Source of the DNA: Neoconidiobolus thromboides FSU 785
Lineage: Eukaryota > Fungi > Entomophthoromycota
Reading direction: 5' to 3'
DNA length: 38,960 nt
NCBI GenBank assembly: GCA_025603075.1
Contig: MU626437.1
Coordinates: forward strand, 1 to 38,960
Position numbers and translations under genes: made by a program. Positions 14,560 to 38,932 of this stretch are shown here, in pieces (the stretch's first letter is position 1; every line of letters starts with the position of its first letter). The notes beneath the pieces were generated by a model, which saw only the letters and a list, made by a program, of their open reading frames with translations, was not told the origin of the DNA and ran no database searches.

Positions 14560-14660
14560 ATATGGAGATGTATTTTTTCATTTATTTTACGAGCAATCTT
14601 TCTGCTTAAATTGTGCTTAAAATGGAAAAAGTGATGAAACCAAAAAAAAAACATACTTAT
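14560..14660 (+). mobile_element. Degenerate copy of the GGGGATG MITE
   Basis: ATATGGAGATGTATTTTTT...GCTTAAAATGGAAAAAGTGATGAAACCAAAAAAAAACAT aligns with the family consensus. The right TIR is decayed. Confidence 0.75.
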
Positions 14661-15356
14661 CTTTAAATTTATGTTATTTTTTTGATTAAAAGTAAAAAAA
14701 TGACAGGTATCAACTGTAAGCTATTCTAAAGTCATTACCTTCATTGCGTATATACCCGGTATGCACCACAAATTTGCAACTAGACCATGATAGATATACT
14801 CATATTATTTGTTCAAGGATTTCAAGTCAAATGAAGCAGTTTGTAGTAATATTTTATTTTTAGAATTTTAAATTTATGACTACTATAACTAATGCCAATA
14901 CTAAATACTTACATGATAAGAGTACATTATCATCTATCATTTGGTTGTAACTTGCTTTAGTTAGTAATACTAAATAGTGCAACTAACAAAATACTTAAAA
15001 AAGATCTTTATGTGTAATATCCTATTTTTTTCTAATAAACAGTTGATATAAAATTTATCCCTTTTAGCTTACTCCCAAGAGATTGCATCTACTAGAGATT
15101 TAAACAATTCCCAGACAGGTCTAGAAAGGAGCCAATAGTAATAATATTAAGATTTATCAAGGAGTTGTTTCTATAATCCACACTTGATTATGTTAAGAAG
15201 AAGTAAATTCTAAAGGTAATTTAAGCTGAGTAAAAATGAACTAAAAAAACAATGTTTGAACCTTCTGTACTTTTTATCCATGGTTAATTTTAAATAAGGT
15301 GCTTCACAGCAATACTTTTTTACTGATTATGCTTAAAATTATATTAGCTTCCAGCT

Positions 15357-15819
15357 TGTGAAATATCGCTTTGTCAGTTCATGGTTAATTATAGCATAAC
15401 AATCGCCTAAGCTGCTGTGTTCTCGAGTTCAGAGGAAATCAATCCCACGTTCTTAGTTTGATTTACTATGAGAATTTCTAGCTCCATCCCAAAGAATATC
15501 ATCTTCTCATTTTGATATTTATACTTTTCAGAGTATAAAAGAGTTTACAGAGTATAGTTGTTCGAGACTTTTTAACTGAATTATTCCCTGATATCTCGAA
15601 CATTTAATAAAGCCATTAAGTTTTCTTAATAGTATTTTACATAGACTTTACATTAATATTGTCTATTCTATTTGTCTTATATAGTTTGTAACCTATTATG
15701 TCCTATTCCTCATAATCCAAGTCTATCTTAGTCACATAAACTAAGACCTTTCGACTTATAGTGTAGTCAACCCAGCAATAGCTGTTCTTGACTCCAAACC
15801 CTGAGTACCAGATTTCACA
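15357..15819 (+). mobile_element. Solo LTR, 463 bp
   Basis: TG...CA termini with inverted ends TGTGAAAT/ATTTCACA, TATAAAAG at 15534 and AATAAA at 15606. About 94% identical overall to 38470-38932 by hand count. No PBS, PPT or matching TSD in the flanks. Confidence 0.85.
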
Positions 15820-15896
15820 CCTATAATATAAAAAGGTTATAAAATCAGAACAATCTATATGAATTTTTAGACATTGTTATTATTTCTGTGATAAAT

Positions 15897-16002
15897 ATAT
15901 GGGAGTGTTTTTTTTGGCTTCGTTATTTTTTCCATTTTTAAGCGCTACTTAAGCGGAAAAATTACTAGTAAAATTCTTGAACACAAAAATACATCCCTAT
16001 AT
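15897..16002 (-). mobile_element. GGGGATG MITE copy (coordinates include the ATAT flanks)
   Basis: ATAT-GGGAGTG ... CATCCCT-ATAT; the interior aligns with the copy at 16273. Confidence 0.88.
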
Positions 16003-16272
16003 GTTGTTTTTTATATATCACTAATAACTTTTTAGTAAAATAACTAGAAAAAATTGATACTTTATTTAAGCTGTTTTAAATATAAAAATATAATATTCTA
16101 AGTTAATAATAAATAAAATTTTATTTCCCATTTGTTTATTTTTGTTTTTTATAATACTATTAAAGCTAACTTTTATATAGATAAATAGCTTTTTAAAGCT
16201 CGTAAAAGATAACTATCAACTACTTTTATAATTGCTTTGTTTACAATAAACACATCTACAGCCAATTGGTTT

Positions 16273-16379
16273 ATATGGGGATGTTTTTTTTGGCTTCATT
16301 ATTTTTTCCATCTTTTAAGCACTATTTGAGTGGAAAAATCGTTAGTAAAATTCTTAAACAAAAAAATACATCCCCATAT
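16273..16379 (-). mobile_element. GGGGATG MITE copy with perfect TIRs
   Basis: ATAT-GGGGATG ... CATCCCC-ATAT, 107 bp. It is the reverse complement of 16913-17019 with 2 mismatches. Confidence 0.92.
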
Positions 16380-16520
16380 ATATAATTTTAAAAAAAGCAA
16401 TGGTTTTTTTTCTGTAGTTATAATGATAATAATAAATGACTTTTTTATGAATATTTGATATAGACTTTAGCTTATTTTTTAACTCATTAATAAATTTAAA
16501 TTTGACAATTCGTACAACAA

Positions 16521-16604
16521 TATTGGGATGTATTTTTGTATTTAATAATTTACTAATAATTTTTATTAATTCAATAAAAATTCTACTAATCTACAACTCA
16601 TATA
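16521..16604 (+). mobile_element. Degenerate, internally deleted MITE copy
   Basis: TATTGGGATGTATTTTTGTATTTAATAATTTACTAATAATTTTT matches the left half of the consensus. The right end CAACTCATATA resembles the CACTCTCATAT variant end. Confidence 0.55.
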
Positions 16605-16789
16605 AAAAAATAATTTAAAGCTGCTAGGTATTATTGCTTTTTAACAAAGAGTTTATTTTTATAGAATTAACTAAAGTTTTAAAATACAGAATGTCTAAAA
16701 ATGGATGCAAAAATAAAACAGTTTGGATATCCTAAATGCCTATTTTTTATTTTAAAGGTTATAATTTTAAAGTCTTGCCACTAGTAATA

Positions 16790-16862
16790 GGGGTAGTAGC
16801 TCAATCGGTAGAGTACTCGCTTTGCATGCGAGGGGCACGGGGATCGAAACCCTGCTACTCCA
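16790..16862 (+). tRNA. tRNA-Ala (anticodon UGC), intronless
   Basis: Acceptor stem GGGGTAG/CTACTCC with the G3:U70 alanine identity pair; anticodon arm CTCGC-TTTGCAT-GCGAG; T6 terminator immediately downstream. Confidence 0.95.
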
Positions 16863-16912
16863 TTTTTTATTTATGAAATCTTAATCAACTTCCTATAGCA
16901 TTGATATTATAT

Positions 16913-17019
16913 ATATAGGGATGTATTTTTTTGTTTAAGAATTTTACTAACAATTTTTCCACTCAAATAGTGCTTAAAAGATGGAAAAAATAATGAAGCC
17001 AAAAAAAACATCCCCATAT
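16913..17019 (+). mobile_element. GGGGATG MITE copy 50 bp downstream of tRNA-Ala
   Basis: ATAT-AGGGATG ... CATCCCC-ATAT, 107 bp; inverted near-identical partner of 16273-16379. Confidence 0.92.
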
Positions 17020-17556
17020 GTTAATAGCTACTGAAGTTGTTATATATACTATTAGTTTAAAAATGTATTATAAACAATAATTATGTTACCTTAAATAAAG
17101 TTGAAAACGATTTAAATTATTGATATAATATCATATATTTATTAGTTGTTTTAAACTATACCTATTATATTGATTATTTATGTTATAAATGTTATACAGG
17201 TAAATCCTATAATTAACTGTATTTTGATAAAAAAAGGTAGTAAAATGAATCTAACTACACTAAAGACTTAAAGGTATTTTTGTTTTAGAATTAATAATAA
17301 TAAAGCTAAATATAACCTCTTATTGGCTTTAATCATAGATTGAATTGGTGCAAAAAATTAAGTCAAATCTTTTCAATATTTATTGACATTTACTTTGATC
17401 AATCTTTTTGTTTATATTTAATTTAGCCTTTTTATTATTTAAATAGTTAATTGTTTGTGTTTAGAAGTATGTTTATTGTAAAAATATTTAATCAGTATAA
17501 TGGAATAAAAAAGATAGAAATAACTAAATGAGTGATAACACAAGTAAACAAAAGTC

Positions 17557-18927
17557 TTAAATATCATCGAGTGAAGGGTAACCCGCTGCTATAGCTGTTG
17601 AACTAGTCAATTTAACTATTTCACTTTTTGGTTCTGATACGCTTTCCTCAGACTCTTCTTCTTTTACTTTAGGGTCATACATCGCATTTACTTTCTTTAT
17701 GATTTCTTTTATTATCAACACATGATTGATACGCTTCTGTTTATCATCCACGTCTTTTTCTTTCTTTTCTTCCATACTTTCTTCGTTATTCAATTTATTT
17801 TCTTTACTCTTCTCTCCCTTCTTAATATCTATGGCTTTCATGTTTGAGATAAGGCCATCCAGTTCGTCGTCAACTAGCTCTTCACTTGTCAATTCTTTAG
17901 CTTGAGAAGGCTCTTTACATAAAGGATTAGCATTCATCATAGTGTACATGTTAGGATCGTAATTCTGGAATTGAGGTTGAGAAGTATTCAACATTTGGTT
18001 ATTGTTGAACTCGTTATTATATTGGACAGGAGCAAACAACATGGAGTTCATATGTTGTTGATCCATCGAAGTAGTATTGGTATCGAAATCTAAAGAGGGA
18101 TACATCACGTTATTATTGTTATTGAAATATTCCGTGTTATTCATAGCCATTTCATTCTGGTTATAATTATAACTATTATCATAGCTTAAATGAGGAGGAG
18201 AAAGGGAAGAAGAGTGTTGATTCAAATTATTCAAATAATCCAAATCGAGCCCATTGGAAGCATTAGTCTGTAGCTGAGTCATAAACTCATTAAAATAATT
18301 AATATCAAAATTACTCTGTAGATTATTATCCATATTAAAGTTGTCCATGTTGTTAAACTTCATATTATTGAGCATTGCCTCCATATCATTATTATACTCT
18401 GGGTTTATACTTTTATTCTGTACTGTAGATACAAAATCACATAACTGTTGGTTTGGAAAATAAAAGCTTTGACTTTGTGGCGATGATATCAAATTATCTG
18501 ATGATGCCGATAATGGGGAAATATCCCTATACATCATATTATTGCTATAGGGATCCAAAAATCCATTCGTAGTATTATATATATTGTTCTCAGCAGCCAC
18601 ACCATTGTTATTGAGTTTGTTGCTATCTTTATTATCACCATGAAGCTTCTCATGTTTCTTGAGGTCTTGAGGCCTCTTGAATGCCTTGCTACAATGGTTA
18701 CACTTGTAAGGTTTATATGCGATGTGTACTTTGAGGTGAGAGGTGATATGGTCTCTTTTAGTCGTTTTTACGTCACAACCATCCCAGTGACAATCCAAGC
18801 AAAGGTTATTGGTACTCTTTCTACCAATATGACTCTCTGTAACATGCTTCAATAGAATTTCTTCATTGTTAAAAAATCCATTGCAGCCTGTCCAGCGGCA
18901 AGGTAAAGCTTCGTTGAAAATATCCAT
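17557..18927 (-). CDS. RIM101: pH-response C2H2 zinc-finger transcription factor PacC/Rim101, intronless, 456 aa
   Basis: Three N-terminal fingers with the PacC signature ([59 protein letters not shown]), an Asn-rich middle and two YPSL motifs. Confidence 0.95.
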
Positions 18928-18995
18928 GTTATAAGTTTTTAATAAGTTAAAATACTAAATAAAAAAATCCTTTTTAACTTTGTTCCCTAAGCATG

Positions 18996-19216
18996 AATCT
19001 TGGCACCAAGATTTCTGTCTACCGCCAATCAGCTTACAAATGTTATTTGGAACGCCAAGAAAGCTATTGATTATTTTTATGATTTCATTTATTGAACAGC
19101 CAATGATATAGCTCACTATCGGCTATCTTTAAATATTTATTGGTTTCTATTTATAGGCTTGATATCCGACTAGAAAGTTGCTAGGTTGGTGATAAAGTTA
19201 AGATTTGATACTTGGC
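18996..19216. promoter_or_regulatory. Cluster of PacC/Rim101 consensus sites (GCCAAG) in the RIM101 promoter
   Basis: CTTGGC at 18999-19004 inside the palindrome AATCTTGG-CA-CCAAGATT, GCCAAG at 19054-19059 and CTTGGC at 19211-19216. CCAAT boxes at about 19025 and 19100. Confidence 0.7.
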
Positions 19217-22200
19217 ATTAGAGATTTATTACAGGTAGAGCTGATTTTATTTTATTTTATGCTAGTACTACTGTCCAAATTCAAAGTCAATCATTGTATT
19301 CAAATTCATTTTAATTTAAGGGTGCTTCTTTAAACTGGCGTGCTTTTTGTTTTGGAAAAGACCCTTTCTAAATGCCTGTTTTTTAAATGGAAAAAGTAAT
19401 TTGACATTTTGGAAGAAATGATTGGGTGGAAAAAATCAACTTAGTAGCTAATAAACTGCGAAAAGTTTAGTAAACATTAATAGAATTTTAAGTAGCGAAA
19501 TTAGTTTTAAGCTTAGATTTAAAAATACTACAGTATAATTAAACTCAAAATAAAAGTTATATTCTGCATAAAAAATATTGAAACATTCTGATGGTTTGTT
19601 TGTGCAAAAGTAACTTTAATTTCAAATTTGTTTATTTCAATCATTATAACCAAGTAGTACACTAACAAATTATATTAAAAGGATCATAAATGAACTAAGA
19701 AAACAAAGATAAGCTAATAGCAATAGGGTTTTTGTACAAAAGCGATAAATTAATAACAAAACTAAATGTTAATTATTTACATAAACTATAAATAATATAT
19801 TAGTTTTTATTTTTAGAGTCCTTTATTAATAAACAGTGTTAGTAAGAAGATCAAGCAAAGAATCATGTATGGTTTAACTAATTGATGTATGAAAGTTAAA
19901 TTTGTTTATTATTTATTGTTATCAAATGATTCCTTTTTATTTTATTTGTATTTTATGAAAGTAAATAATGGATATAAAAAATCTAATATTTAAATTCATT
20001 TTAAAATATAAAAAAGACTTTAAGATTTTTAATAAAACAATGAAATCCATTATCTAAAGTGAAATTTGTAATGTTAATATAGTATTAATATATTTCAATA
20101 TTTAATTTAATAATAATAATACTTTAAAAAGCAATGTTTAATTTAATATTGCGCTTTAAAACTTTATTCGATTAAAAATTATTATATAATATATGATAGC
20201 TTTGATTTATTTTATAGTTTTAACTAAGAGGAATTTTACACTTACATTTTATAAAGACTAAATATGATAAAAATTTATTTATTAAAATTATGTCATATTA
20301 TATCCCAAGTTTTTTTTAAATCTAAAGGTTGAAAGTTTTGTGTTTTTATCAGTTAAAGTTATATATATGAGGGGTTACTTGAGGTGAGTAAAGTTAAAGA
20401 ATGAACAATTTCTATAGAATGTCGTGGATTTGTCTATAACGGGATGGTTAAAAACATTTAAAAGGACAGAGATATTAGACATAAACAAATTCCGTAAACT
20501 ATTAAATAGTTTTACCAATACTTAATGATTAACTTAAAAATAAGCTTGAAATGTGACAATGTTTTGACAAATTAAAGCATATCAACTGTTAAATATTTGA
20601 CAATAAAACTTTACCATGTAATGCTATAACTTAGCGGGAAAATAAATGAGGCAAAACAATATAAACTTCGAGAAGCAGACAGCTAATTACATTAATAAAA
20701 AAGTATAAAACTTAGTAATTTTTTATACGGTATTTGGTTTATCCTAAAATTTGCTAAGGAGCTTTAATGATATAATCAGCCGTTTTAATAGAAAAATTCA
20801 AGTTGGGGTAAATTTTTAGCTTATTATCGAAATTATTATAATTATATAATAAAATGCCATGTAATTATTTAAATAATAACTTGACTATTTATTTAATAGA
20901 ACGATTAACAAATAACTCCATTAATAATATGTGCTATCACAATTTATTAATTGTGCCGTGTTACTAATTAATGATATTTTATTTTACAAAACAAATTTTG
21001 AACTTTTATCAAATAAAAGTTTCTATTTATAGCTAAATTTTAAGCTATTCTTGTTTTATAATTTAACAACTTATTTTCTAAAATTTACTATTATTACCCA
21101 AGCAAAAACCCTTAGCTTTAAGTTTAGGGTAATTGTATATAGCCGTTTTATAAAATATTCATTACTTCTTTATATATATTTAAATAATAGCATTGAAGCT
21201 TGTATATCACAACTCTCTTATCTTATACACCGTAATCCATTTAAACCATAAGAAACATTGATATAATTTATTATGATTTTATCAATTCTATATTTAGATA
21301 AACTTTATTTTCCATTATACTCAAGTTAAAAATAATTTTTATATTTTTGTACCCTTTGATTTTCTATTGTATTCAGTTAGCTTATGGCAGCAAACGTTCA
21401 ATTAAAAGTTGAATGAGTTTTGTTGCAGCAAAGTTCATTTTGTTTAGAAATACAACCAACTTATTATAAAGTGGTTATAATAAAGTTATAGTTGTGGACT
21501 GAGCATTAAGTTATAATAATATTAATAATAATGATTTCATTTTATTTTTAGAATGAAAATAATAAAATAATAAAATAATAAAACATAGGGCAACAGTTAA
21601 TATAATTTGATGCACTTGGCTATTTAAAGTTTATACTTAATATTTTATCTCGGCAAAATAACAAGATCAATAACTTTAGTAATACAAATAAAGTTCTAAT
21701 TTTTAACCAAGCATAAAAAGGTAAGCATATTATATATGTGGGATGATGCAAATACAAGTTATAGTATAACAAGGTCTAGAGTATTAAAACAAATTTCTTT
21801 CTCTTCGGGGAAGCAAATTCATTTGAACCCTCAAGAATAGTACCACGAGTTGCTGAAAAGTATCAAATTCTATGGAATGGTTCCATAAATGGGCTTTTTT
21901 TATAACCAAAACAGATTTCAACTTAACCCAAGATCTAAACAATATTTTTGGGCATGTCTAAATAGTCAGTAGCTTATAAAACGGTTTCATTTATTAATTA
22001 CAAACATACTATCTTTTAATTGGTTGATATGGTTTCAGTTGATCTTAACTCGATATCATTTGATTGAACCTTAGTTTATAGAATTTTATTTCAAATAAGA
22101 GCCACAAATCATAAGAACAAAAAACATGTTTTAATGTCTTTATTGGTAGATTTAAATTAACTAATCAAGTAAATGAACTAACTTCAAGATTGGTACCGCT

Positions 22201-22961
22201 AAGTTCATTCAATATTCATTGAAATTAAACTAAACAAAGCAATAGGTAAAACTTAATAGTGGACGCTTGAATTCTTTAAATTAAATATAGCCTTAATGTA
22301 AAATTTTCATTTAAAAAAAACAAAGCTTTATTATTTTATTATTAAATAAACAAAACCTTAAGCTTTTAATAGCTGTTTTAATAAATGAATTTACACCACA
22401 TGATTCATAAGAAAGATCTCATTAATCCGGGTTGAAACTGGTTTTATAAATGGTTGTAATCAACCTTGAACATTTTAGAATTTTTGAGATTGGGAATTAA
22501 ATAAGTTTTGTAAAAATATTTATGATTTTTGTTGAAATTGTTTAGTCTTCTTCAGTAGTAGCTTCTATTTTCTGCCTATCTTATGAATCCTTAAGGAGTA
22601 CCTTAAACTTGTACCTAACTTGTGATTTTGTAACTGTAAAACTATATTCTTCAGGCTGCCGCATTAACTGAGATTACACAAATCAACTTCTTACTTAAAA
22701 AGTTACGGAATAAATTTTCCAAAAATTTTCAATATAGAAATAATAAAAGTTCTTATCAACTCCCTTCTTAATTTTAAGTTCACTATCCTTAAATAACATT
22801 TCCCCCTATATTTGTTTTTATTTACTTTTAATTTATTAGCTTTTTTTATTTCTATTTGGGATTCAAGTTTGACTTATTTTTTAATCGTATATAAATAACT
22901 CCAAATTTCAATTTCTTTTTTTTTCACTTTTATTTTTTCTAAAATTTAATTTGAATTAAAA

Positions 22962-24458
22962 ATGACCACAATATCAGAGCAATCTATATCGCACAACCTT
23001 TTACTCAAAGCAAAAAAGAATAGGAAATCAATTCAGACTAGTTCCTTCTTACAAAAAATTCAAGAAGATGAACTGACAACAACAACTATTCAAAAGATCT
23101 CAACTTCACCAATTTTATCTCAACCAACGAACACCATTTATAAAGACCCTATAACTTCAGCAAGAACTTCTCGTCCTTCTTTACCACTTTCACGTTCAAA
23201 GAGTTTAGATAAAAGAGATTTAACCATCAATCCCCCACTACCACGTTTTGGTCACTCTCTTATTACCAAACAACCTCCTGTGATGCGAGCTTCACTCCAA
23301 TCAAATCCTTCTTATTCCTTAAGTATGAATCAGATGAGCTCTGAGGACATGTCTAAAGAACGTATTTCAAGATGCAGGACACGCAAAACATTGATGAATA
23401 TACCAAGTTTCCAAACGATTCATTCAATTGTGGAAGTGGAACATCGATTTGTTAAAACAAAACCATTACTTTCTTATAAGCGTTGTTTATTAAAGCAAGG
23501 GGTTATTATCAAAGATAATGGGAAAACACAATCTAATCGACAATTTTTTTTATTTAATGATATCCTTGTTTATGGAGCTATATTAACAGAGGAACAATCA
23601 AAACAATTTGGTAAAGAATTGTTTAAACAAATAACGGTATCTTTGGGCAATTTATGGATAGAAACCTGTGTTGAGAGTGATTTAGCTTTATGGATGACTA
23701 CAGAGAAAGAACATTTTAAAGTTTTATTTTTAAGCTTAAAAGATAAAAAGGAATGGTTTGAAGCTATACAAATGGCACTTTATGAATATCGTAACCGACC
23801 ACGTAATAAATCTTTACTCCACCATGATAATGATCCCAATGATTCTTTAAGTTCAAGTATGGCTCATTTTTTTAAAGCTCTATCGTTACCTGGATCCCCA
23901 GTAGTAAAAACTTTACGTGGTTGGACAATGTCTAGAAAACTTAGTTTCACTTCAGTGACTAGTGAAGATTCTGCTTCAAGTTCTGTTTCTTGGATCCCTG
24001 ATAACCAAGCTGAAAACTGCATGGTTTGCCAAGAGACCAAATTTTCAATAATGGTACGTAAACATCATTGTCGTTTTTGTGGACTTATCATCTGCTTTAA
24101 ATGCTCCCATTATCAGTTATCAAACGGTAAAAAAATCCGCTCTTGTTCACCTTGTCATCAAAAGTTAAGTAAAGGTGTTCTAGAGAATAAAGCAAGTGCA
24201 GACAAATTAAATGCTTCTCTTCTTAAACCCACTCCAAGAACGACGTATAGAACCAATTCTTCAGAAACTATTAAATCTCCACCAAATTCTGATAAAACTT
24301 TACTGCCTCGTTCAAGTCCCATTAGTACCGGTACATTATCTGATTCTGGTTCTGAACGTACTTTCGGGTCAAATCATTCTAACAAGCCTAGCACTAGTCA
24401 ACAACGCGCCCATCATATTTCCCCTCTTAATCCCTCCCATCCCGCTCATGGGTCGTAA
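22962..24458 (+). CDS. PH- and FYVE-domain protein (PLEKHF/Phafin- or FGD-C-terminus-like), intronless, 498 aa
   Basis: PH start CLLKQGVIIK...RQFFLFNDILVYG and end KKEWFEAIQMA; FYVE WIPD..CMVC...RKHHCRFCG..CFKCS..RSCSPC; S/T/P-rich termini. Confidence 0.9.
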   Translation: MTTISEQSISHNLLLKAKKNRKSIQTSSFLQKIQEDELTTTTIQKISTSPILSQPTNTIYKDPITSARTSRPSLPLSRSKSLDKRDLTINPPLPRFGHSLITKQPPVMRASLQSNPSYSLSMNQMSSEDMSKERISRCRTRKTLMNIPSFQTIHSIVEVEHRFVKTKPLLSYKRCLLKQGVIIKDNGKTQSNRQFFLFNDILVYGAILTEEQSKQFGKELFKQITVSLGNLWIETCVESDLALWMTTEKEHFKVLFLSLKDKKEWFEAIQMALYEYRNRPRNKSLLHHDNDPNDSLSSSMAHFFKALSLPGSPVVKTLRGWTMSRKLSFTSVTSEDSASSSVSWIPDNQAENCMVCQETKFSIMVRKHHCRFCGLIICFKCSHYQLSNGKKIRSCSPCHQKLSKGVLENKASADKLNASLLKPTPRTTYRTNSSETIKSPPNSDKTLLPRSSPISTGTLSDSGSERTFGSNHSNKPSTSQQRAHHISPLNPSHPAHGS

Positions 24459-25038
24459 TCTATGTTTATTTTTTAATTATATTGCTTCAAGTTTACAAGC
24501 AAAAAAAAGTTATATTAATTAGTTGAGTTAATTATTTTATACAATAAATAAAAAATATATTTATAATGACTTTTATTTAAATTTTATGTTAATGTTAAAG
24601 ATATTGACAATAGGACTGTTTTTAATAGCTGGAAGTAAATCGTTGTTAATTTTTTAACTGTTATGGTTGCACATAAAATAAATTTTAGTATTAAACCTAC
24701 TAAAAATAAGTAGTAATTTAAGATAGTTTAAACAACTATGTTTAAACCTTAAAAAAATAGAAACTTTAATTCAAATTAACTAGTTAAAACAATAGCAGCT
24801 CAATAAAAAAGTACTAACAATTTTAATCACAGCTTCTTGTTTTACACTACCAATTATAGCCCTAAAAGTGAAGAACATAACAATAAAATGGTATAACTAT
24901 TAACGTTTAACTAAAATTATAATCACATTTTAAATGTTATTAAATAGTTTAAGGAGATGCTATTTAATTAGATTCATAAATTGATCCATTTTTTATGAAA
25001 ATAAGAAATTCCCCCTTTTTTATTTATATTTAATTAAA

Positions 25039-25141
25039 ATATGGGATATGTTTTTTTTACTTGTGTTTATTAATAAGTTTTTTGAAAATCTATATTGTAT
25101 AATAAATGGACAATATAAAGTATGACATCCTTATCCCATAT
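25039..25141. mobile_element. MITE-like element of a second GGG-ended family
   Basis: ATAT-GGGATA ... TATCCC-ATAT. Perfect inverted symmetry extends 16 bp (25033-25048 vs 25132-25147). Size is similar to the main family but the interior does not align well. Confidence 0.6.
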
Positions 25142-27054: not shown

Positions 27055-27927
27055 ATGAGCAAAGTAAAAGTATTCCTAAATGTCCACGACTTGGAGCCCT
27101 CACGTAGCGTGGAGTCCAATTTAGTTCCAAAAAAAGGATTATTAATAATTCGTGGAATATTATCTTTATTTCAATTTATAGTTTTGGTTTTATTAATTGT
27201 ACAAAACTATAATAGTCCATTAACCTTTGGTATGTTTCTGACAAATTTTGGGTTCTATGGTTTATCGATTTATATCTGGGTAAATATATTAACTAATTTA
27301 TTGAAACATATGAACTAACGTATAAATTCATCATAGTGGTCCTTTTATTTAAGCGTGCGCGCTGTCCGACACACAAAAAGATACCAACCATTTGAAACTA
27401 CACACTATACAATTCATTTCATCTATCAGTTGCTTTATGAATCTATGTTGATCTATCACTTCATCATATCTATTATTTACTGGTCATTATTAGCTAACTC
27501 TGAGGTCTCTACACTCCCTTCTTTAGCATTGTTTTTAACCATTGCTCGTCATCTCTTTAATTTTGTCTTTATGCTGATTGAATTCCTTTTCTCGAGAAAT
27601 ACTGTCTATTTTTCTCATTATCCAATACTTTTGCTGTTTGGGATTCTTTATATTTGTTTAGCTCTTTTAATCCATTCTATGTAAGTTTTATTATGTCGTT
27701 TATTCAATTATCTAATTGCTGATATATCTCTTTATAGCAATGATGTCTGGGCATATCCCTTTTTAGATTATAAGAAATCTCCACTAACATTTGGTTTAGT
27801 TATTGGTGGTATCTTTATCTTTAGTTTACTCTATTATTTATTGTTGTCTTATCTTCATAAATTGAGGGATAGATTGTTTGCTAAAAGATATGTTAAAGTG
27901 AGTTCTATGGTTACAAGAGAGCCTTGA
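27055..27927 (+). CDS. FAR-17a/AIG1-like (rolling stone-like) multi-pass membrane protein, paralog 1
   Basis: Exons 27055-27279, 27337-27680, 27738-27927. Motifs LLIIR, FLTN, IYWSLL, ARHLFN, IEF and WAYPFLD; about six hydrophobic segments. Confidence 0.82.
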
Positions 27928-28979
27928 CAATATAATTAATAATACTGATAGTGATTACTTTTTTACGTTTTATTAATTAAATCTTTAGTAAAGTTGATTT
28001 CTTTAAATGAAAATTCCATTTTTCGATTTTTTAAATATGAGTATATTTTTGCATAAATTGTTAAAGAATTAGTGATGTAAGTAGTTAAATACAGTAGCTA
28101 ATTAATTAAATGTTTTTAATATATTTTATTCTAAAGATATATTCTCATAATTTTTTCTCACGTATAACTTTTCTAAGTTATTTATAAACATAAGCCGGTG
28201 CTATGAAACTTAGAATCAATTAAACCATGTTTAAAAGCAATTAACACTCCATTATTATTTGTTAAACAAAACAACTTTAACTAACTTAATAAAATGATAA
28301 TAGATAATAAAATATTATAAAGAACAAATTTATTAATTAATTTATTTTATTCCTTCAGCTTATATTTCCTATCAATAAAAAATTTGTTTAATAAAAAATT
28401 TTAAGCTATTGTAATACCAATTGACCCTCCTAAAGAGCTTTAAATTTTTTCCACATGTACACCATTTAATTTCACAAATCCGAGTTCTAGTATACAACTA
28501 AAGTAAAAAGTATACATAAACATAATAACGTTAATAAAGAAATTCATTATCATCATCACATCGTAAACTCCAGTCTTTTTTTTAATTATTTTTAAATAAA
28601 ATATCCGTATGTTTCAACTAAACACTAAAAAACAACACAATGAATTACTAATACTATTGGATTAATTAACAATTTAATATTACTAGATCCTTAATTTTGC
28701 CATAATATAGCTTATATAAATAATCTAATTGTAAAATAAAAGCATAAGCTTCACTACAAAAAAAGAAAATAAACTTCAAATAGATATGCTGATCTCAAAT
28801 GTTAAATTCAACATGTCTGTCATTTATAGACCCACTAACAAAACTACTAATTTGAAAATCACTTTCTTCTTAATTATTATAAATTATTGATATAATAAAA
28901 CTAAGTTTAAAGATATAATTAATAATAATAATAACAAATAATATTTTACTTCTTAAACCCATTTAACAACTGCTAGTTT

Positions 28980-29900
28980 CCAAGTTTGCTATTTTTAATA
29001 TCCTTTAATCAAAGTAATCTAGCCTAGTAATAGGAAAGCATACTTAAATAAACAGTTAAATTTTCAATCTATCAACTCTTATACTTATAAAAAGTATCTC
29101 GAAACTTTTCCAAAAAGACAAATAATTCCTCTCTTTCACACTCTTCATCACACTAAATACCATTAACAAAAACCTTAAACCAACTACGGTTAATTCAAAA
29201 GCGCTAAATCTCGATGAAGTGTATTAATCAACACATTTAATTGAATTTGTCTAAGACCAACTTTCATTACCTTATTCTCGTAATCAACTTCCATCTTATC
29301 CTCTCTCATCCTTATAGTAACTTCATTATCGATTTACATATCTCCAGAAAATGGTCTGACTAAATATTCATCATTTATTTAAAGATGAAAATTTCTTACC
29401 TCGAAAAAAGTTAAAAAAACCAGCTGCATCTTTCAATGTGTTTCTTAGTTAAATAGAAAAAATAAATTCAGCTTCTGAATAACTAAATTCTAATATAAAT
29501 CTTTTACTTCATCTAACAATACTCCTAAGGATAAAATGTAACTCGTTCTGTCTATTTTGCTAGTTTGAAACCTTTGCAGGCCTCTAGCTTTTTTAGCTCT
29601 TTGAATAAGTTATAAAACAAAAGTACTATTTATATAAATAGCCTTATTAGTTTCATCTCTTACAATATTGATATTTATATAAAATAGAAATTACGACAGT
29701 CAAATAAAATCACTTGGTTCTCTAATTTAAAAACTTCAACATGATTAAATCAAAGAACTTAGGATGTTGCTTTTATCTAGGTTGATCTCATGTAGTAAAC
29801 AGCTTAATATCACATGCTCCCAGGCTAGAATTGACAATACTTCATTTCTTGGCTAAAAATGCTTGAGATTAATATCTTTGGGGCGGGGTTTGAGCTTTAG
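28980..29900 (-). pseudogene. Possible decayed gene or transposon remnant
   Basis: GC-richer stretch with protein-like minus-strand segments (EVLSILAWEHVILSCLLHEINLDKS; DEYLVRPFSGDM*IDNEVTIRMREDKMEVDYENKVMKVGLRQIQLNVLINTLHRDL) broken by stops and frameshifts. Family not recognised. Confidence 0.3.
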
Positions 29901-30280
29901 AGGATCTTTTAGAGAATTGAAATAAAGTTGGATTCTAAAATATTTCTCACACAGAAAAGAAGTAAGATTGTTTTTTCAATAAAAAATCAAATGATTTATG
30001 GTTTTCTTCTCATACAATTTCAAATTTTCCTTCAAAATGACGTAAAAAAATCCCTTATTTCAATATAAATAAATAATTATAAATTGGTGGACATTATAAT
30101 ATATTGATTTCATTAATTAAAATATGATATCTATTTTATTTACGTTTTAATTTGTCAAATTTTGAAAAACGGATTTTTTCCCCTAAAAGTTGAGAAATAT
30201 TACGAGATTTTTATTATTAGATATTTTCATAGCTAGTTTAATATTTTCAAAAAAGGAGAAAAGTTATTGGTTACAACAGT

Positions 30281-30387
30281 AAATGGGGATGTATTTTTGT
30301 GTTTAAGAATTTTAATAGCAATTTTTCCGCTCAAATAGTGCTTAAAAGATGGAAAAAGCGATGAAGTCAAAAAAAGCATCCCCAAAT
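30281..30387 (+). mobile_element. GGGGATG MITE copy with non-palindromic AAAT direct flanks
   Basis: AAAT-GGGGATG ... CATCCCC-AAAT, 107 bp; the interior aligns with the family. Confidence 0.9.
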
Positions 30388-30706
30388 TCTACTTTTAAAT
30401 TGTTTAAAAATTTTCAACCAAACCTATTATCTAAAAAAACACAGTAGAAAATTTGCTGTCATTATACATTTTATCATATTTTTATTTCAAAAAATAGTAG
30501 ATGACTATTCATGAAAATATTTAATAGCATAATTTTATAACTTATAAAAATGTACATATACAATGATGAAACATTGAAGCATTAAAATAGGAAAATCTTT
30601 AATTTAACAATTTATTATTATAATATAAAATTTTATCAAGCCTCAATAAAAAACACAATTAAATAAATGAGATTAGTAAACAACAACAGAGCACCCATCC
30701 TTATTA

Positions 30707-31514
30707 TTACAACTGAGTAATAACATCCATATTTTTTGTTTTTCTCCTGCCAAAACAATCTCTTGTATGATGAATTGCCACAAAAATCGAAAATATAACT
30801 ATACAAAGGATCAAACTACCACATACTACTCCAGCAAACAAACTAGGATTTTCAATATAATTTAAAAAGAAATAGACCCAAATGTTATATCTATAAAAAA
30901 TATATTAATACTAAAATTACTAATAATATATATAAATTTTACCTCAAATGAAATAGTAGTGCATAAGGTAAATAGATCAAAAGAGTCATTAAAACAAATG
31001 GAAGATAATTAAAAAAGATAGGATTACAGCTTAAAAGCACTTCCAATATCATAGTTAAAAAACTAATTCCATGAAAACTAATAGCTAAAAAATAGTCTAT
31101 AGGTAAACTATTAGGGCCCAAAGCCTCACTTGCTAAGAGTGACCAGTAAATCAAGAATATCAACGTTGTCAATGTAAAGCAAGTCCCGTACAGCCAAAGA
31201 TAACCAAATTTTAACGTCCAATGAGTATTTTCGTAGGGGATATATGATTGCCTCGATAAATGATATCTTAATGATACATAAAATGATATTCCCATATAAA
31301 CTGTTAAACCATAATATATCAAATTTGATAAATACATTACAAAACTTAGCGGCTGTTGATAGTTGTAGATGATATTAATGACGTGGACTATAATCATGTA
31401 GAAAAATATTATACTACGGATGAATAGTAAGACAGTTGGGGACACATAATTGGAGGTTACTGTGAGTTCTCCATGATATTCCTCTAAACGTAAGATGCTA
31501 CGATATTTTAGCAT
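30707..31514 (-). CDS. FAR-17a/AIG1-like membrane protein, paralog 2
   Basis: Exons 31514-30943 and 30890-30707. Motifs LLFIR, YLSN, IYWSLL, SFHGIS, ILE and WVYFFLNY. The ATG at 31514 is preferred over the ORF-track start at 31577. Confidence 0.82.
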
Positions 31515-32996
31515 TATTATATGTTGAAACTGGGAAAGAATTGTTGTAATGAGATAAGATTTAAAAAGATAAATCAATGAATATATATAAAAATGACACT
31601 AATTTATATTTTAAGTGGATTCTAGGTTTCTCCAAGTTTTAAATAATCATTATCTCAAGTCAATTTTAAGGGGAAAAGATGGATAAAAAGCTTGAGTAAC
31701 AAACTTTAAAGCTTTAAAAATAAACTACTTGGTTCGTTTTTTAATAGTTTTTCACCTTTTTTTAGTCGAGTTTTTGGGGTAGATATAATACACTCAATTG
31801 CTTTATAAAGTAGTTTTTTAATTAAAAATTTTAAAATCGATTCAAGTAGAAGTTCACTTGAACTTTGAAGTTTGAAAGATCAAAAGTTACGTGCAATGAA
31901 AACCTAAATGAAATTTTTCAAATTTATAGTAAATGATAATTTATAAATTAGATACTTGATAAATATATTCAGGTATAGAAAAGTAAACTAGAAAATATAA
32001 CTTTTTTATATTTTCATACTTTTGTTTTCAAACCAGCTTTTAAGAGCATAATTTATAAACTAAGCGTTAATTTGCTAAATTTAGATGCAAGTTGATTAAG
32101 CCTTTAAGTTAAATTAAGTTTAATCTATATTTTTATGAAAATAAAATGCTAAGAAAAAAAGAATTTTTATTTTCAAACCTTGATTAATTTGATTCTTATT
32201 TGATATAGTTAAAGAAGTTGAATCTTTTTATACTTAGGTAGGAATTGAAAGATTGAAAAGTAGTGTTAATTGAAACTATAAAAACTTAATTTGTTTATCT
32301 TTGATACAGTACTTTCATAGAATTAATATTATTAATGATGGTAGTATAATTGAATAATTCGTTAAAGGTTTAAACAGTAGCTATTGTTTTAATAAAATTG
32401 TAACAAAGCTATAAAAATTAAACATATTTAAACATATTAAACACATTTAAAACAAAAGCTTAGAAAATAATTATAGTAAACTAACAATAGCATATTTTCA
32501 TATTTTTATCCTTTATTACTATATCTTATTTAGCTTTTCATTTATTTATGCTTAAATATTATGTTTTTTGTATAGTCTTATTGTATTTGATTGAGAGCTG
32601 CTAAATGATTATCATTTATACTGTATTACAGTTATTTATTTGCATTATCATCTTTGACAATATTAATCTATAAAAGTGTTCTATCTTTCTTTATAAAATT
32701 AAATTAAATTTCAACTAATAGCAAAAATGATGCAAATTACATCAAGTATCTATTTTGTTTTTCAAACTGATTTAACAAATCCATTAATTTGTAATTCTTG
32801 CAATATAAAATTATTTATAAAACAAATCTACTAATGAATAATACTTTTAGATATAAAATAATTAATCCAATTGTAAAAAGCTCAAATTTTGTCTGTATGT
32901 TAAAACTTATTTTTGACTTAGAGTTAACTAGTCTTTTGCATATCTAATGTTATTATATATATAATAAACATAGCTAAAGCTATGGAAATTTCTAGG

Positions 32997-33070
32997 GCTC
33001 GTATGGCGCAATTGGCTAGCGCGTCCGACTGTTAATCGGGAGGTTACTGGTTCGATCCCAGTTATGAGCG
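32997..33070 (+). tRNA. tRNA-Asn (anticodon GUU)
   Basis: Acceptor stem GCTCGTA/TATGAGC, anticodon arm TCCGA-CTGTTAA-TCGGG, T arm ACTGG-TTCGATC-CCAGT, T-run downstream. Confidence 0.96.
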
Positions 33071-33543
33071 TCTATAATTTTTTGTGTAAAGTATAGCTGG
33101 TTTACATTTATATATGCAATGGTTAACTGTTATTTAAAAATAGAAGTTCAAATAAAGTTTTTATTACAGCCTAAAAATTAAGCTTTAAAAAAACTAAATA
33201 TCTAAATTTAAGTAATTATATAACCATAAAATTAGTCTGAAGTTTCCCAATCCTTTAATTTTGTAAAAGTCGATTATTCACTATTTATAGATTTTAATAT
33301 AAATATTTATTAAAATCTATCAAATTAATATTTCTAGATAAATTCACTGTTTAAGCTCTTATTTGATAATTTTTATATTTTAAATACTTTTGGTGATTTG
33401 GGAAACATGTTCAAGCTTTTTACTAATTTAATTAAAAATTTAGCTAAAAATTATAGTCTATTTAAAAAATTTCATTAAAACTCAATGAACAGCTACTTAC
33501 GATTAAATATAGATGTTTCCCACAAGTTGTGTCCAAGTAAAAT

Positions 33544-33615
33544 TTCTTCATGGTCCAGTGGTTAGGATTTTCCGCTTTCACCGGAACGGCCGGGGTTCGA
33601 TTCCCCGTGAGGAAG
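33544..33615 (+). tRNA. tRNA-Glu (anticodon UUC)
   Basis: Acceptor stem TTCTTCA/TGAGGAA, anticodon arm TTCCG-CTTTCAC-CGGAA, B box GGTTCGATTCC. Confidence 0.95.
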
Positions 33616-33709
33616 TACTAAACATCTGTTTTATAATTGTGCTTGATTTTTTGTATAATTTTGGTTTCTAAAACAACTAGTATGTAAAATATAAATATAA
33701 AAACTGATA

Positions 33710-33814
33710 ATATGGGGATGTATTTTTGTGTTCAAGAATTTTATTAACCAATTCTCCGCTTAAATAGCGCTCAAAAAACGAAAAAATAATGAAGTCAAAA
33801 AAACACTCTCATAT
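33710..33814 (+). mobile_element. GGGGATG MITE copy 94 bp downstream of tRNA-Glu
   Basis: ATAT-GGGGATG ... CACTCTC-ATAT, 105 bp; the interior aligns with the family. Confidence 0.88.
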
Positions 33815-34168
33815 GTTTAAAAATGAGCCTTATTGAAGTTTTTCAATTATACAAATTTATTATTACCTTAAAGTGAATTAATAAATTGTTACCAATCAAG
33901 CAGTAGTTTAATTATAACTAATGTAAAATCTCAAAGATATCAAAATTTGAAGTTAAGCAAACAAAAACATGACTAAAAGAACAATTAATTCAACTCTATT
34001 CAAATTAAGCAACCACAAATCTCTTAAGATTTGATAATTTAAGTTATTCAAAAAGAATAAAAATTACAGATTGTCACACAAGCTCTCGCTTACGAAATTC
34101 AAAGCAAATTATTTTTACATATTTATCTACAAAAATCCAAATCAATAAATAAGAAAAAAAAAGCCAAA

Positions 34169-36171
34169 ATGTCTTCTGAAGATTTAATTTATGACGATGA
34201 TGCCAGTTATGATTTAGAATATAGTTCCCAAAGCGAACTTGGTGAACAAGAATTAAGTTTAGAGAATAGGTATTATGACGCTAAATGTAAGTATTCTTAA
34301 CATTTAATAAATTGTCAGCTCGTGTTTTACTCCATTCTACAATGACATTTTTTTTTTAGCATTGGTAAAAGAAGATCCAAGTAAAGTTATTGATGCTTTT
34401 GAAGAAATTATTAAACTCGAAGAAGGGGATGGACCTTTGTAAGTTGAATCCGGATTTTTATTACATTTTTAAAGTATTTATTCGAATATTTTTAGTACAT
34501 TTAAAAGTACCAAACAATTGTTAAAGTTCACTTATCGTAATGGGGATCTTGAAAAGGTAAAATATTATAATCTATTACATCATTTGTACATGAATAACAG
34601 CAACGGTAAATTAATCTGTTTATTTTTTAATTAAATAGGCCATGTCTTATTATCAGAAAATACTGTCTTTTCCATTAGGTGATGGAGTAGCATCGACTTA
34701 TAAAGATAGTTCTATTAATAATATGGTGGATTTGATATCCAAAAATACAAATAATGAGTTTTTGGATCAATTTTTTAAAGATACTATCAAGGTTCTTGAT
34801 CCAGTTAGAAATGAGGTAAAAAAAGAACAATTGTTTGTTTTGATATGGGATAAAAGTTTAACGACTTTTGTACTTTTAGAGATCATGGATTCGTACTCAA
34901 TTGAAGTTGGCGCATCTTTGGTTAACTCAAAAAAATTTTGATAGTTTAAGAGAGGTAGCTAATATTGAATATTTTAATTTTATAATTTATTATTATTAGT
35001 TATTACCTACTCTCTATAATTTTTGTAAAGATACATCAGGTAATGATGAAGAAAGAAAAGGAACTCATTTATTAGATATTATTTCAATTGATATGGAAAT
35101 TGCTTCTATTTTTAAAGATAATAAAAAATCAAAGGTAACATTATAAATTAAATATAATTAATATAATTAATTATTATTAATATAGAGATTATATGAACGA
35201 GCCTCAAATGTAAAAACAGCGTTTGCTTCACCTAGAGCAGATGGTGTTATTAGAGAATGTGGAGGTAAAATGTATATGAGAGAAAGTAATCATAGTAATC
35301 CAATAATAATTATTAATTATTAATATTATTATTCTATTAGGTAATTATGAATTAGCATATAAAGATTTTTTTAAATCATTCAATGCTTATAATGATGTTG
35401 GTGCCCCTCAAAGATTAAGAATTATAAAATATATTGTATTAACTAGTATGTTATCTAATGCTTTAGTCTCTCCTTTTGATTCACCTGAAATGAGCCAGTA
35501 AGCTGATATAAATTGAGTAAGAGATATATAATTAAGTTATTTAATTTGTTATTTTTAGATATCGTAGTCATAGAGAATGTCGTCATCTATATCAATTGAT
35601 CAATGCCTTTCAAAATAAAGACTCAAAATTGTTTGAAGAAATATTAGCAGGTAAAGGAAGAATAATAGCAATAGTAATAATAGCTTTATTTTTTATAAAT
35701 AGAACATTCCGAATCTCTACAAGACGATCCATTTGTATCTAGTTTCTTCTATCAATTAACACATACAGTACGTACACAAACATTAATTAAAATTTGTAAA
35801 AGTTTTACTCAATTAAAAATTGAATTTATTGCTATGGTAAATTTAATAAATAATATTAATAATAATGATATGAGTTATTAATATTTTATTCTTAGTTATT
35901 GAATCTATCAAGTGAAATTGCAATGGAATTGATAGTGAATTCACTATTAGATGAAGATATCAAAGGTCATATTGATGATGTCAAAAATATGTTGGTATTA
36001 GAACATAAAATGTAAGTTTGTTTTATTTATTATAGTAAATTAATAATTGTTTATTTTCTCTTCTTTTTAAATAGTAAACAAGGAAGTAAACGTAAATCAA
36101 CCTATAAAGAAATATCTAATACTTTAGATAATTTTCAAAATTCAGTAGTCAAAAAATTATCTGCTTATTAA
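34169..36171 (+). CDS. CSN2: COP9 signalosome subunit 2 (PCI domain), divergent, about 12 exons
   Basis: Acidic N-terminus then LENRYYDAK, RKGTHLLDI, GVIRECGGKMYM, DFFKSFNAYNDVGAPQR, SPFDSPE, DDPF...VRTQTLIK and IKGHIDDV. Confidence 0.88.
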
Positions 36172-36335
36172 AGAATGTTTTTGACTGGAATTTATAACGG
36201 TTGTTGCTTAAAGAATAAATTATTAATTTACATGAGTACTGATTAATGTAATTTACTTTCATATTTGAATTTAAGGTTATAAAAAAATAATCAAACATAT
36301 TACTTTTTATTTTATTAACTGATTTAATAAATTTA

Positions 36336-37242
36336 TTAAACTTGAGTCATATTCATATCATTTTGATTACTTTCATAAGGCTCCTTTTCAATATTATCAA
36401 AAGAGTGATCATATCTGCCTTTTCTATCTCTTAATTTATAAACATAGCAATAAATTAATTGCAATACAACAGCTAATACAAGCAAAGCAATAACAACTAC
36501 TGTGAAGGTAATGGGATAGTCAATATAATTTAAAAAGGGATAAATCCAAAAGCCATGACTAAAAATAATAAATAAAGATATAATACAATAATGGTAGACT
36601 TACATCTTATGTACTAAAATAGCCATTGGAAGATATAAATATAATATAACAATCAAGGGTATAAAATGCCAAAATACAAACATATTGCAACATAATATCA
36701 ATTCAATCCAACAGAATACTAAATTCAATGCATGCATAGAAATTGATTGATAAGCATAAACTGGATCTGTTTTAAGTTTAGTATCATTTGGGAATAACAA
36801 AGACCAATAAACAATAGTAACTACTGGGGCTAATAACATAATAGATTGGAACAGTAAAGAATAGATAAAACGAAAAGACCAATGAATGTTATTGAAGGGG
36901 ACATATGTAGGGGCATGAAGATAACTACGTAAAGTGAAATAGGTTGTTATCTAGAAATAATAAAAAGATTAATCATTATTTTTATAAATAAACTAATAAA
37001 CTTTTATTTACTATAAAATACACAGTAATACCAAAGTATGATAAGTGCGTTAAGAATACAAAATATGTGATTGGGATAGCTTTGTTCTTTATAAATAATA
37101 CAATCACTGCTGCTATACAATATAAGGTAAGTATGCTTCTTATTACAAGTAATGTACGAGTTGAAATAAAATTAGATTTGATAGGTCTTTCTGGATGCAA
37201 ATGAGCTACTTTAAAATGACGAATTAAAGCTTGTCTGACCAT
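36336..37242 (-). CDS. FAR-17a/AIG1-like membrane protein, paralog 3
   Basis: Exons 37242-37012, 36950-36604, 36558-36336. Motifs LLVIR, FLTH, VYWSLL, SMHALN, IEL and WIYPFLNY. Confidence 0.84.
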
Positions 37243-37982
37243 CTTGTTTTGTTATAAAATGGCTGAAGAATTAATTAGTTGACTATATTAATAAAAGGAA
37301 TCGGAAAAGTGAAGATTGATTATTTTTAGCTTCATAGCTTTAACTGCTATTACGGAAATTGTATTTTTAAATTTTTTGATTACTAAATTTAGTAAAGATG
37401 AATTTTATTCAAAATTTACGATTTAATTTTAGACTTAATTTTAACAATAGGGTTTTGATGATTTAATTTTGCTCCAAATAATCAAAGGTTAAAATTTTAA
37501 TTATTATTGTTCTGCTCGATCTTTTATATCTTAACTGCTTATTTAATTCAAAACCGAAATCAAAATTAAAATTAAAATAAACACTTCATGATCATTATTC
37601 CCCTTCCTATCGTTCCTTTAAAGTCATCTATTTTTATTCCTCCAGTTGTATATGCCAATAAAAACCTATCCCTTTTGAAAGTTTTTTTTAGATGTACCAT
37701 GAAGTTAAATAAAGACTTAGCAAAAACCATTAGATAAATGTAAATTAAATATTAATGAAGTAATTCATGTTTGAAATCAATACTATTTATTTTTTATAAA
37801 TCATATTACTACTTTAACTAACCTTCATTTATTAATTTAATTTAAATAATATAATATTAGACATATCATTTCATATCAAAATTTTTAAGCTACTCAAAAG
37901 TAAACAAAACATATTCCTAAACACAAATAACTTTTTAAAAACAAACACTATTGAGAAAAGTCAAGCTATATCAAAACATATA

Positions 37983-38056
37983 CGCTCATAACTGGGATCG
38001 AACCAGTAACCTCCCGATTAACAGTCGGACGCGCTAGCCAATTGCGCCATACGAGC
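37983..38056 (-). tRNA. tRNA-Asn (anticodon GUU), identical to 32997-33070
   Basis: Exact reverse complement of the + strand Asn gene. Confidence 0.96.
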
Positions 38057-38124
38057 TTTGAATTCATTAACTTGTTTGTTATATATATATTGCAAAATTT
38101 ATATTGAATAGATTTTAATACAAA

Positions 38125-38229
38125 ATATGGGGATGTATTTTTTATTTAAAAATTTCACTAACAATCTTTCCGCTCAAACAGCCCTTAAAAAATAGAAAAA
38201 GTAATGAAGTCAAAAAAATACTCCCACAT
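38125..38229 (+). mobile_element. GGGGATG MITE copy 68 bp upstream of the minus-strand tRNA-Asn
   Basis: ATAT-GGGGATG ... TACTCCC-ACAT, 105 bp; the interior aligns with the family. Confidence 0.85.
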
Positions 38230-38464
38230 GGGGTTGTCTGGATTGGTTTCATCATTTTATCCAATTTTTAAAAATTTTGTATTTCAAAAACCTCGCTCAA
38301 AATTTTTTATTAAAATAAAAGTATCCAGACACAGTTCTAAATCATTCTATTATAGTTTATACTGTAATTTAGTTGAATTTCTACTAGATCTTAAATACAT
38401 ATTCTTATAAAACTTTATTGAGAAATGTTTATTATTGGCTGCTTTATAAACAACATTGCAGATT

Positions 38465-38932
38465 TGTTATATGAAATATCGCTTTGTCAGTTCATGGTTA
38501 ATTATAGCATAACAATCGCCTAAGCTGTTGTGTTCTTGAGTTCAGAGAAAATCAATCCCATGTTCTTATTTTGATTTGTTATGAGAATTTCTAGCTTCAT
38601 CCAAAAGAGTACTATCTTCTCATTTTGATATTTATACTTTTCAGAGTATAAAAGAGTTTACAGAGTATAATAGTTCGAGGCTTTTTAACTGAATTATTCC
38701 CTGATATCTCGTACATTTAATAAAGCCACTAAGTTTTCTTAATAGTATTTTACGTAGATTTTACACTAGTGTTGCCTATTCTATTTGTCTTATATAGCTT
38801 GTAACCTATTGCGTGCTATTCCTCATAATCCAAGTCTATTTTAGTCACATAAACTAAGACCTTTCGACTTATAGTGTAGTCAACCCAGCAATAGCTGTTC
38901 TTGACTCCAAACCCTGAGTACCAGATTTCACA
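38465..38932 (+). mobile_element. Solo LTR
   Basis: 38470-38932 aligns without gaps to 15357-15819. Taking TG at 38465 as the left end gives an AGATT direct repeat on both sides (38460-38464 and 38933-38937), a plausible 5-bp TSD. Confidence 0.85.

Follow-up and report, generated by a model that had tools for sequence, protein, structure and literature searches.

Contig MU626437.1 of the entomophthoralean fungus Neoconidiobolus thromboides FSU 785 was analysed over its whole length of 38,960 bp (hereafter the window; contig C180 of an assembly of 24.6 Mb in 799 contigs with 25% G+C). It carries four transfer RNA (tRNA) genes and eight copies of a short element with inverted ends, identified below as a miniature inverted-repeat transposable element (MITE; Table 1). 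Copies were detected by blastn, with one of them (16913-17018) as reference, and by nhmmer with a six-copy profile. The tRNA genes were called by ARAGORN and Rfam (RF00005), which agreed on all four. A preliminary description of this sequence had listed the eight copies, all of which were recovered at their positions by blastn and nhmmer. Its statements that a copy lies within 100 bp of three of the four tRNA genes, and that six of the eight copies are located within 0.9 kb of such a gene, were borne out by the measured distances. The similarity among the window repeats is far above chance (E down to 1e-53). Public DNA runs cover 32900-38300 as short contigs with a break at each tRNA gene and MITE, and the right junction of the 33710 copy with unique DNA is seen in contigs of four out of four runs. 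They showed no empty site, although contigs broken in this way could not have revealed one. The number of copies is unremarkable, as eight are present and the genome-wide density predicts about 12 for 39 kb. In the proximity of MITEs to tRNA genes, however, the window is an extreme by luck, with a MITE within 100 bp of three out of four tRNA genes, compared with 9 of 42 (21%) outside it.

Table 1. MITE copies, tRNA genes and other repeats in the window, with distances measured edge to edge.
Feature	Position	Strand	Evidence and remarks
MITE copy, diverged, 3'-truncated (model positions 2-99)	14560..14651	+	nhmmer E=1.9e-15; blastn 79% identity
MITE copy, full length including 4-bp flanks	15897..16002	-	nhmmer E=1.3e-29; 89% identity to reference copy
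MITE copy, full length, 410 bp upstream of tRNA-Ala	16273..16379	-	blastn, nhmmer; 98% identity to the 16913 copy and inverted relative to it
MITE, 5' half only (~45 bp), 225 bp upstream of tRNA-Ala	16520..16564	+	blastn 87% over 46 bp; sequence inspected
tRNA-Ala(TGC)	16790..16862	+	ARAGORN; Rfam RF00005, 58.5 bits
MITE copy, full length, reference copy, 50 bp downstream of tRNA-Ala	16913..17018	+	blastn, nhmmer
MITE copy, full length, AAAT flanking both sides (non-ATAT duplication), nearest tRNA gene 2.6 kb away	30281..30386	+	nhmmer
tRNA-Asn(GTT), closest MITE 639 bp away	32997..33070	+	ARAGORN, Rfam
tRNA-Glu(TTC)	33543..33616	+	ARAGORN, Rfam
MITE copy, 93 bp downstream of tRNA-Glu	33710..33814	+	nhmmer
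tRNA-Asn(GTT)	37983..38056	-	ARAGORN, Rfam
MITE copy, 68 bp upstream of tRNA-Asn(-)	38125..38228	+	nhmmer
Solo long terminal repeat (LTR)-like repeat, 463 bp, outside the MITE family, in a cluster of mobile elements near tRNA-Ala	15357..15819	+	
Second 463-bp LTR-like copy, 415 bp upstream of tRNA-Asn(-)	38472..38932	+	
Third LTR-like copy, cut, at contig start	1-95		

The structure of the element was derived by aligning 42 full copies together with 30 bp of flanking sequence. Its body is non-coding, begins with GGGGATGT and terminates in ACAYCCCC. The element is 97-99 bp long, and the bodies of 39 among 44 full copies measure 95-99 bp; the inverted ends are imperfect (GGGGATGTnTTTTT and the complement). 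The flanking 4 bp are identical on the left and right in 30 of the 44 full copies, most often as ATAT (24) and otherwise as ATTT (2), AAAT, ATAA, AATA or AAGT (1 each), whereas 5 bp are identical in none of the 44. Because four bases match, the fifth never does, and all six non-ATAT pairs agree on both sides as well, these flanks represent a true 4-bp target duplication with a strong preference for ATAT. The element thus is a MITE, being short, non-coding, uniform in length and high in copy number, with terminal inverted repeats and a target duplication of fixed length. As the preliminary description had inferred, it is of the cut-and-paste type and has an A/T-rich 4-bp duplication. For Sola1 and Sola2 transposons, target duplications are given as AWWT or as ATAT, AAAT and ATTT (PMC3845634, PMC3627910), and the 4-bp A/T-rich duplication found here is of this AWWT type. 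As far as the non-autonomous Sola1 and Sola2 elements (Bao et al., 2009) are portrayed in the papers citing them (PMC3845634, PMC3627910), they resemble the MITE family in that they are short and non-coding with inverted ends, have a duplication of exactly 4 bp that is A/T-rich, reach high copy numbers and can fold into hairpins. The element is therefore classified as a putative Sola-type non-autonomous DNA transposon by its target duplication. No Pfam model exists for Sola, and a survey from 2017 recorded Sola2 once in fungi (PMC5751038). Compared with this single record, a swarm of several thousand Sola-type copies in an entomophthoralean fungus would be an unusual host record.

Two samples were used to follow the family beyond the window. 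The main sample comprises 239 kb in five contig stretches (the window, C108, C107, C2:96-136 kb and C22:30-70 kb) with 27 tRNA genes and 66 MITE copies. The second consists of 20 independent tRNA loci, 3 kb in length, that together contain 23 tRNA genes and 23 further copies. The skew of the sample towards tRNA-rich contigs was offset by pattern counts in the whole genome, for which the 14-mer TAAGAATTTTACTA (at most one mismatch; control, the reversed 14-mer) served as the MITE marker and the B-box pattern GGTTCRANNCC as the tRNA marker. Of the 66 sample copies, 42 are marked by the 14-mer, which has no other match in the 239 kb. From this marking rate and the 4,984 matches in the genome, versus 158 for the reversed control, the family is estimated at about 7,600 copies, which corresponds to one copy per 3.2 kb and about 3% of the genome. 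The B-box pattern marks 48 of the 50 sampled tRNA genes, with three extra matches, and its 438 matches in the genome versus 151 for the control indicate about 300 tRNA genes. With about 0.5 MITEs within 250 bp per tRNA gene in the sample, these 300 genes would account for approximately 150 copies, or 2% of the family. The remaining 98% of the copies are far from any tRNA gene, which argues that the family is not guided to genes that RNA polymerase III (Pol III) transcribes. Hence, the view formulated from the window, in which the MITEs are grouped at tRNA genes, does not extend to the family in the genome.

A regional link between MITEs and tRNA genes does not exist either, because the marker density is no higher on tRNA-rich contigs, which hold 113 tRNA genes per Mb versus a mean of 12, than in the whole genome (176/Mb versus a mean of 202/Mb). 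None of 100 exact-marker copies on contigs C1-C4 lies within 1 kb of a B-box, where only one to three were expected. The tRNA genes themselves are heavily clustered, with 27 in the 239 kb sampled versus about 12 per Mb on average in the genome, and include runs of identical isoacceptors that are a few kb apart and have unrelated flanks (four Asn and three Lys genes on C108, four Lys-CTT genes on C107).

The positions of MITEs and tRNA genes relative to protein-coding genes are similar. Both avoid the first 300 bp beside open reading frames (ORFs). Within 800 bp of genes in the 239 kb sampled, the density of MITEs is 0.19/kb on 5' sides versus 0.61/kb on 3' sides, and no MITE is located within 150 bp of the 5' side of a protein-coding ORF. 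In the DNA 300-800 bp past gene 3' ends the density reaches 0.8-1.5/kb, which equals that beside tRNA genes (1.40/kb in the interval of 0-100 bp, 0.73/kb in that of 100-250 bp). In the surroundings of other MITEs the respective values are 1.06/kb and 1.72/kb, and the background is 0.25-0.3 per kb. MITEs are thus about as dense near each other as near tRNA genes. Since MITEs and tRNA genes share the gene-distal DNA, they are frequent neighbours. The MITEs mPing, Stowaway and Tourist, which occur near genes in plants and insects, are likewise small, A/T-rich, high-copy, intergenic and mutually nested. In contrast to these elements, however, the present family shuns protein-coding genes on their 5' sides and is concentrated past the 3' ends as well as in the cores of large intergenic regions.

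Taken together, the family probably is an ordinary, very abundant Sola-type MITE that survives in harmless intergenic DNA, including the flanks of tRNA genes, and is not guided to Pol III genes. Its movement into ATAT-like sites would depend on a transposase with a gene at another place in the genome, and copies persist mainly where intergenic DNA is distant from genes and free of promoters. As tRNA genes occupy this same gene-distal DNA, MITEs and tRNA genes often end up side by side. The example calls for caution, as two features limited to the same gene-poor DNA can seem associated in a single window.

The tRNA genes proper and their immediate surroundings are free of the element. None of the 50 sampled tRNA genes is interrupted by a MITE, and the stretch from about -65 to +20 is devoid of MITEs in all of them. 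Genome-wide, no MITE end was found from -63 into the 5' half of B-box-bearing genes, where the far density predicts about 4.5 (P=0.011); the lone match inside this zone is a reverse reading of the palindromic B-box. Upstream of 48 tRNA genes (window and loci L001-L050), ATAT occurs 1.65 times per gene in the 20-bp bin from -20 to -40 versus about 0.3 times elsewhere. This enrichment suggests a conserved TATA-like upstream element of Pol III genes in this fungus. The stretch from -20 to -40 contains no insertions although the preferred target ATAT is five-fold enriched there. Most likely, insertions are missing from -65 to +20 either because of the damage they would do to the upstream TATA-like/TFIIIB region or the terminator, or because access is blocked by bound factors. 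The empty zone, with the ATAT-rich TATA-like element inside it, provides a sequence-level estimate of the DNA that each tRNA gene needs in this fungus. On contig C12 (G000:C12:8864-8989), a MITE terminus (8959-8989, minus strand) was found together with a B-box (8864-8874, minus strand), and with this spacing a copy of full length would stop about 16 bp short of the B-box, which places its end within a tRNA gene. The arrangement may represent a tRNA gene disrupted by a MITE or a chance B-box.

Two groups of observations weigh against simple survival in harmless DNA. The first is the frequency of copies beside tRNA genes, which exceeds the expectation under every null model built. In the main sample, 7 of the 27 tRNA genes have a MITE within 100 bp and 12 have one within 250 bp. 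Random placement in DNA free of long ORFs predicts 2.1-2.5 (P 0.003-0.01) and 4.1-5.0 (P 0.0002-0.002) such genes, respectively, shuffling of each tRNA gene inside its own intergenic region 2.8 (P=0.0095) and 5.6 (P=0.0005), and placement at matched distance to the nearest ORF 2.3 (P=0.006) and 4.7 (P=0.0003). Without the window, 9 genes with a copy within 250 bp compare with 4.3 expected after shuffling (P=0.004) and 4.2 at matched ORF distance (P=0.008). Gene models in these analyses were stop-free stretches of at least 90 codons, and the null of permissive DNA therefore is rough. Stretches of 60 codons fragmented the intergenic regions and led to a misleading result, and a likelihood classifier based on codon usage could not tell real genes from noise. 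The second group concerns the upstream edge of the empty zone. In the sample, 19 copies lie upstream at a distance of up to 500 bp, and 7 of these are located at 68-95 bp. Genome-wide, 7 of 9 copies in the upstream window of 64-164 bp lie at 68-86 bp (P=0.0007), as do 4 of 6 at previously unseen loci (P=0.027), with the reservation that the windows for these peaks were picked after seeing the data and that counts are small. A peak of this kind is not expected if copies are simply retained in neutral DNA. The target motif was rejected as its cause, for ATAT is at baseline from -60 to -100.

The excess beside tRNA genes is real and replicated, and amounts to about two-fold (1.6-2.5-fold over the nulls). 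At the 20 new loci, a MITE lies within 100 bp in 5 of 20 cases and within 250 bp of 7 tRNA genes. A further null was restricted to DNA at least 300 bp from an ORF on its 3' side and applied to tRNA genes outside the window. Here, 21% versus 12% of the genes have a copy within 100 bp (P=0.059) and 38% versus 24% within 250 bp (P=0.034), and the excess falls to 1.6-1.8-fold (P 0.03-0.06) under this gene-distal, promoter-free null. Across the matched nulls, 9-12% of tRNA genes are predicted to have a copy within 100 bp versus the 21% seen outside the window (P about 0.01-0.06).

A possible, albeit rather unlikely, alternative that would account for these deviations is that a weak hot spot of integration flanks the Pol III transcription complexes. 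A Sola-type transposase would then use ATAT-like sites at the borders of the complexes, at about -65 to -90 and +20 to +75, several-fold more than other permissive DNA, perhaps because the DNA just outside the TFIIIB/TFIIIC footprint is accessible or bent. This would explain about 1-2% of the copies. Besides the persistence of the excess under all nulls and its replication at independent loci, the hot spot is favoured by the narrow upstream peak at 68-86 bp, which directly adjoins the zone without insertions. Downstream, 6 of 20 sample copies lie at 21-50 bp. In the genome-wide counts, which compare near and far windows anchored on the B-box, 21 copies start at 19-119 bp downstream versus 9 at 319-419 bp, and 16 of the 21 are found at 22-75 bp. 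The spacers that separate tRNA gene and MITE show no homology among loci, even for the same tRNA, and the copies consequently stem from independent insertions and not from copied units. Proximal copies also are neither older nor younger than distal ones, judged by comparable model scores and an equal proportion of exact markers. This comparison does not separate insertion bias from retention, however.

Other results speak against the hot spot. The effect is small and its windows are post hoc; for the new loci alone, the peak has a P value of 0.027 in position and of about 0.08 in height versus the far density. The upstream near window as a whole is not enriched, with 9 copies ending at 64-164 bp versus 7 at 334-434 bp, and the density beside tRNA genes is matched by the promoter-free DNA past gene 3' ends. 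A simple preference for open chromatin is at odds with the avoidance of the promoter sides of genes that RNA polymerase II transcribes. Moreover, de novo insertions of the DNA transposons Mu and P occur near tRNA genes at random frequency (PMC7337890). The family carries a weak, possibly interesting edge effect at tRNA genes. If the pile-up reflects insertion bias, targeting of tRNA flanks, so far shown for retroelements, would extend to a DNA transposon, and about 300 natural sites would be available for studying how the chromatin of Pol III genes shapes integration. The family would in this case be the first cut-and-paste family with a preference for Pol III flanks, albeit one with most of its insertions elsewhere.

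A dedicated Pol III-targeted transposon, tethered like Ty3 or TRE, or an element co-opted as an insulating boundary of tRNA genes is very unlikely. Either would fit the copies within 100 bp of three of the four tRNA genes in the window and of about a quarter of those sampled. However, a copy within 100 bp is lacking at about 72% of tRNA genes, and only some 2% of the roughly 7,600 copies lie within 250 bp of any of the 300 genes. An orientation rule relative to the tRNA gene was not found either, and copies occur on both sides at variable distance. Tethering is further contradicted by the missing enrichment on tRNA-rich contigs and, with low power, by the absence of a B-box within 1 kb of any of 107 high-identity or exact-marker copies on the largest contigs. 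A boundary function, as considered in the preliminary description, is hardly compatible with copies at just a quarter of the genes and with their varying side and orientation. Of the Pol III targeting proposed there, the small, reproducible excess stands, as do the sharply bounded empty zone (-65 to +20) and a possible narrow hot spot adjoining it, but most copies are not at Pol III genes and no set orientation exists.

The contrast to established systems is pronounced. Nearly all copies of Pol III-targeted retroelements are found at fixed positions, which are reached via TFIIIB, TFIIIC or Pol III subunits (PMC5911963). The MITE family resembles Ty3, Ty1, TRE5/TRE3 and DGLT-A (PMC5911963) in that some copies lie just outside the footprint of the Pol III promoter and terminator, and in that the tRNA flanks here also carry LTR remnants. 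Unlike these retroelements, which have a set spacing and often a set orientation, it is a DNA transposon without coding capacity and is about 2% tRNA-proximal, with an excess of 1.6-2.5-fold. A location of the majority of copies beside Pol III genes, typical of these retroelements, does not apply to the MITE family (about 150 of 7,600), and a fixed position would apply at best in part, to the narrow upstream cluster at 68-86 bp. Neither 5S rRNA nor U6 genes occur in the 239 kb sampled. The Dada DNA transposons are attributed to Kojima and Jurka in 2013 (cited in PMC5751038). Such elements reportedly insert inside tRNA or small nuclear RNA genes at a specific sequence. They share with the MITE family that they are DNA transposons with a link to small-RNA genes. 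In contrast to Dada, however, the MITE inserts neither inside tRNA genes nor within about 65 bp upstream, according to the 50 sampled genes and the genome-wide 5' pattern. Dada-type insertion into the genes is excluded by the 50 uninterrupted tRNA genes.

Least likely of all is that units of tRNA gene plus MITE were copied by segmental duplication or by composite transposition between flanking MITEs: the tRNA-Ala between two inverted copies of 98% identity and the clustering of tRNA genes of one isoacceptor on sampled contigs would be in line with such copying, but it was rejected because tRNA flanks from which tRNA and MITE had been masked are non-homologous, save for overlapping neighbours and a shared LTR repeat, because the spacers show no relationship even where two genes encode the same tRNA, and because a second sampled tRNA-Ala(TGC) has neither a MITE within 1.3 kb nor flank homology. 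The two inverted copies that flank tRNA-Ala in 16273-17019 are far more similar to each other than typical pairs. This cassette gives no sign of movement, the other sampled tRNA-Ala(TGC) having no shared flank or nearby copy.

The LTR-like repeat listed in Table 1 also occurs in other sampled regions (C108:9672-10010, C107:26521-26967, L023:1927-2387, L037:57-524 and L039:1855-1952), and a first look revealed 680 candidates genome-wide, many of them 94-95% identical to the 15357-15819 copy. In the window, a full copy lies 28 bp from the contig end and a cut copy at the start, and these copies at both ends probably explain the assembly breaks. All assessable sampled copies have a tRNA gene within 1 kb, and MITEs frequently lie between the two. 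The repeat was nevertheless rejected as a true tRNA-targeted element: genome-wide, contigs for which the B-box list is full carry 11 copies, and just 1 of these has a B-box within 1.5 kb. At C108:9632-9672 and L037:9-57, the LTR-like repeat abuts a MITE that is cut at about base 41-47. Thus, LTR elements inserted into MITE copies at these two loci, resulting in nested elements beside tRNA genes.

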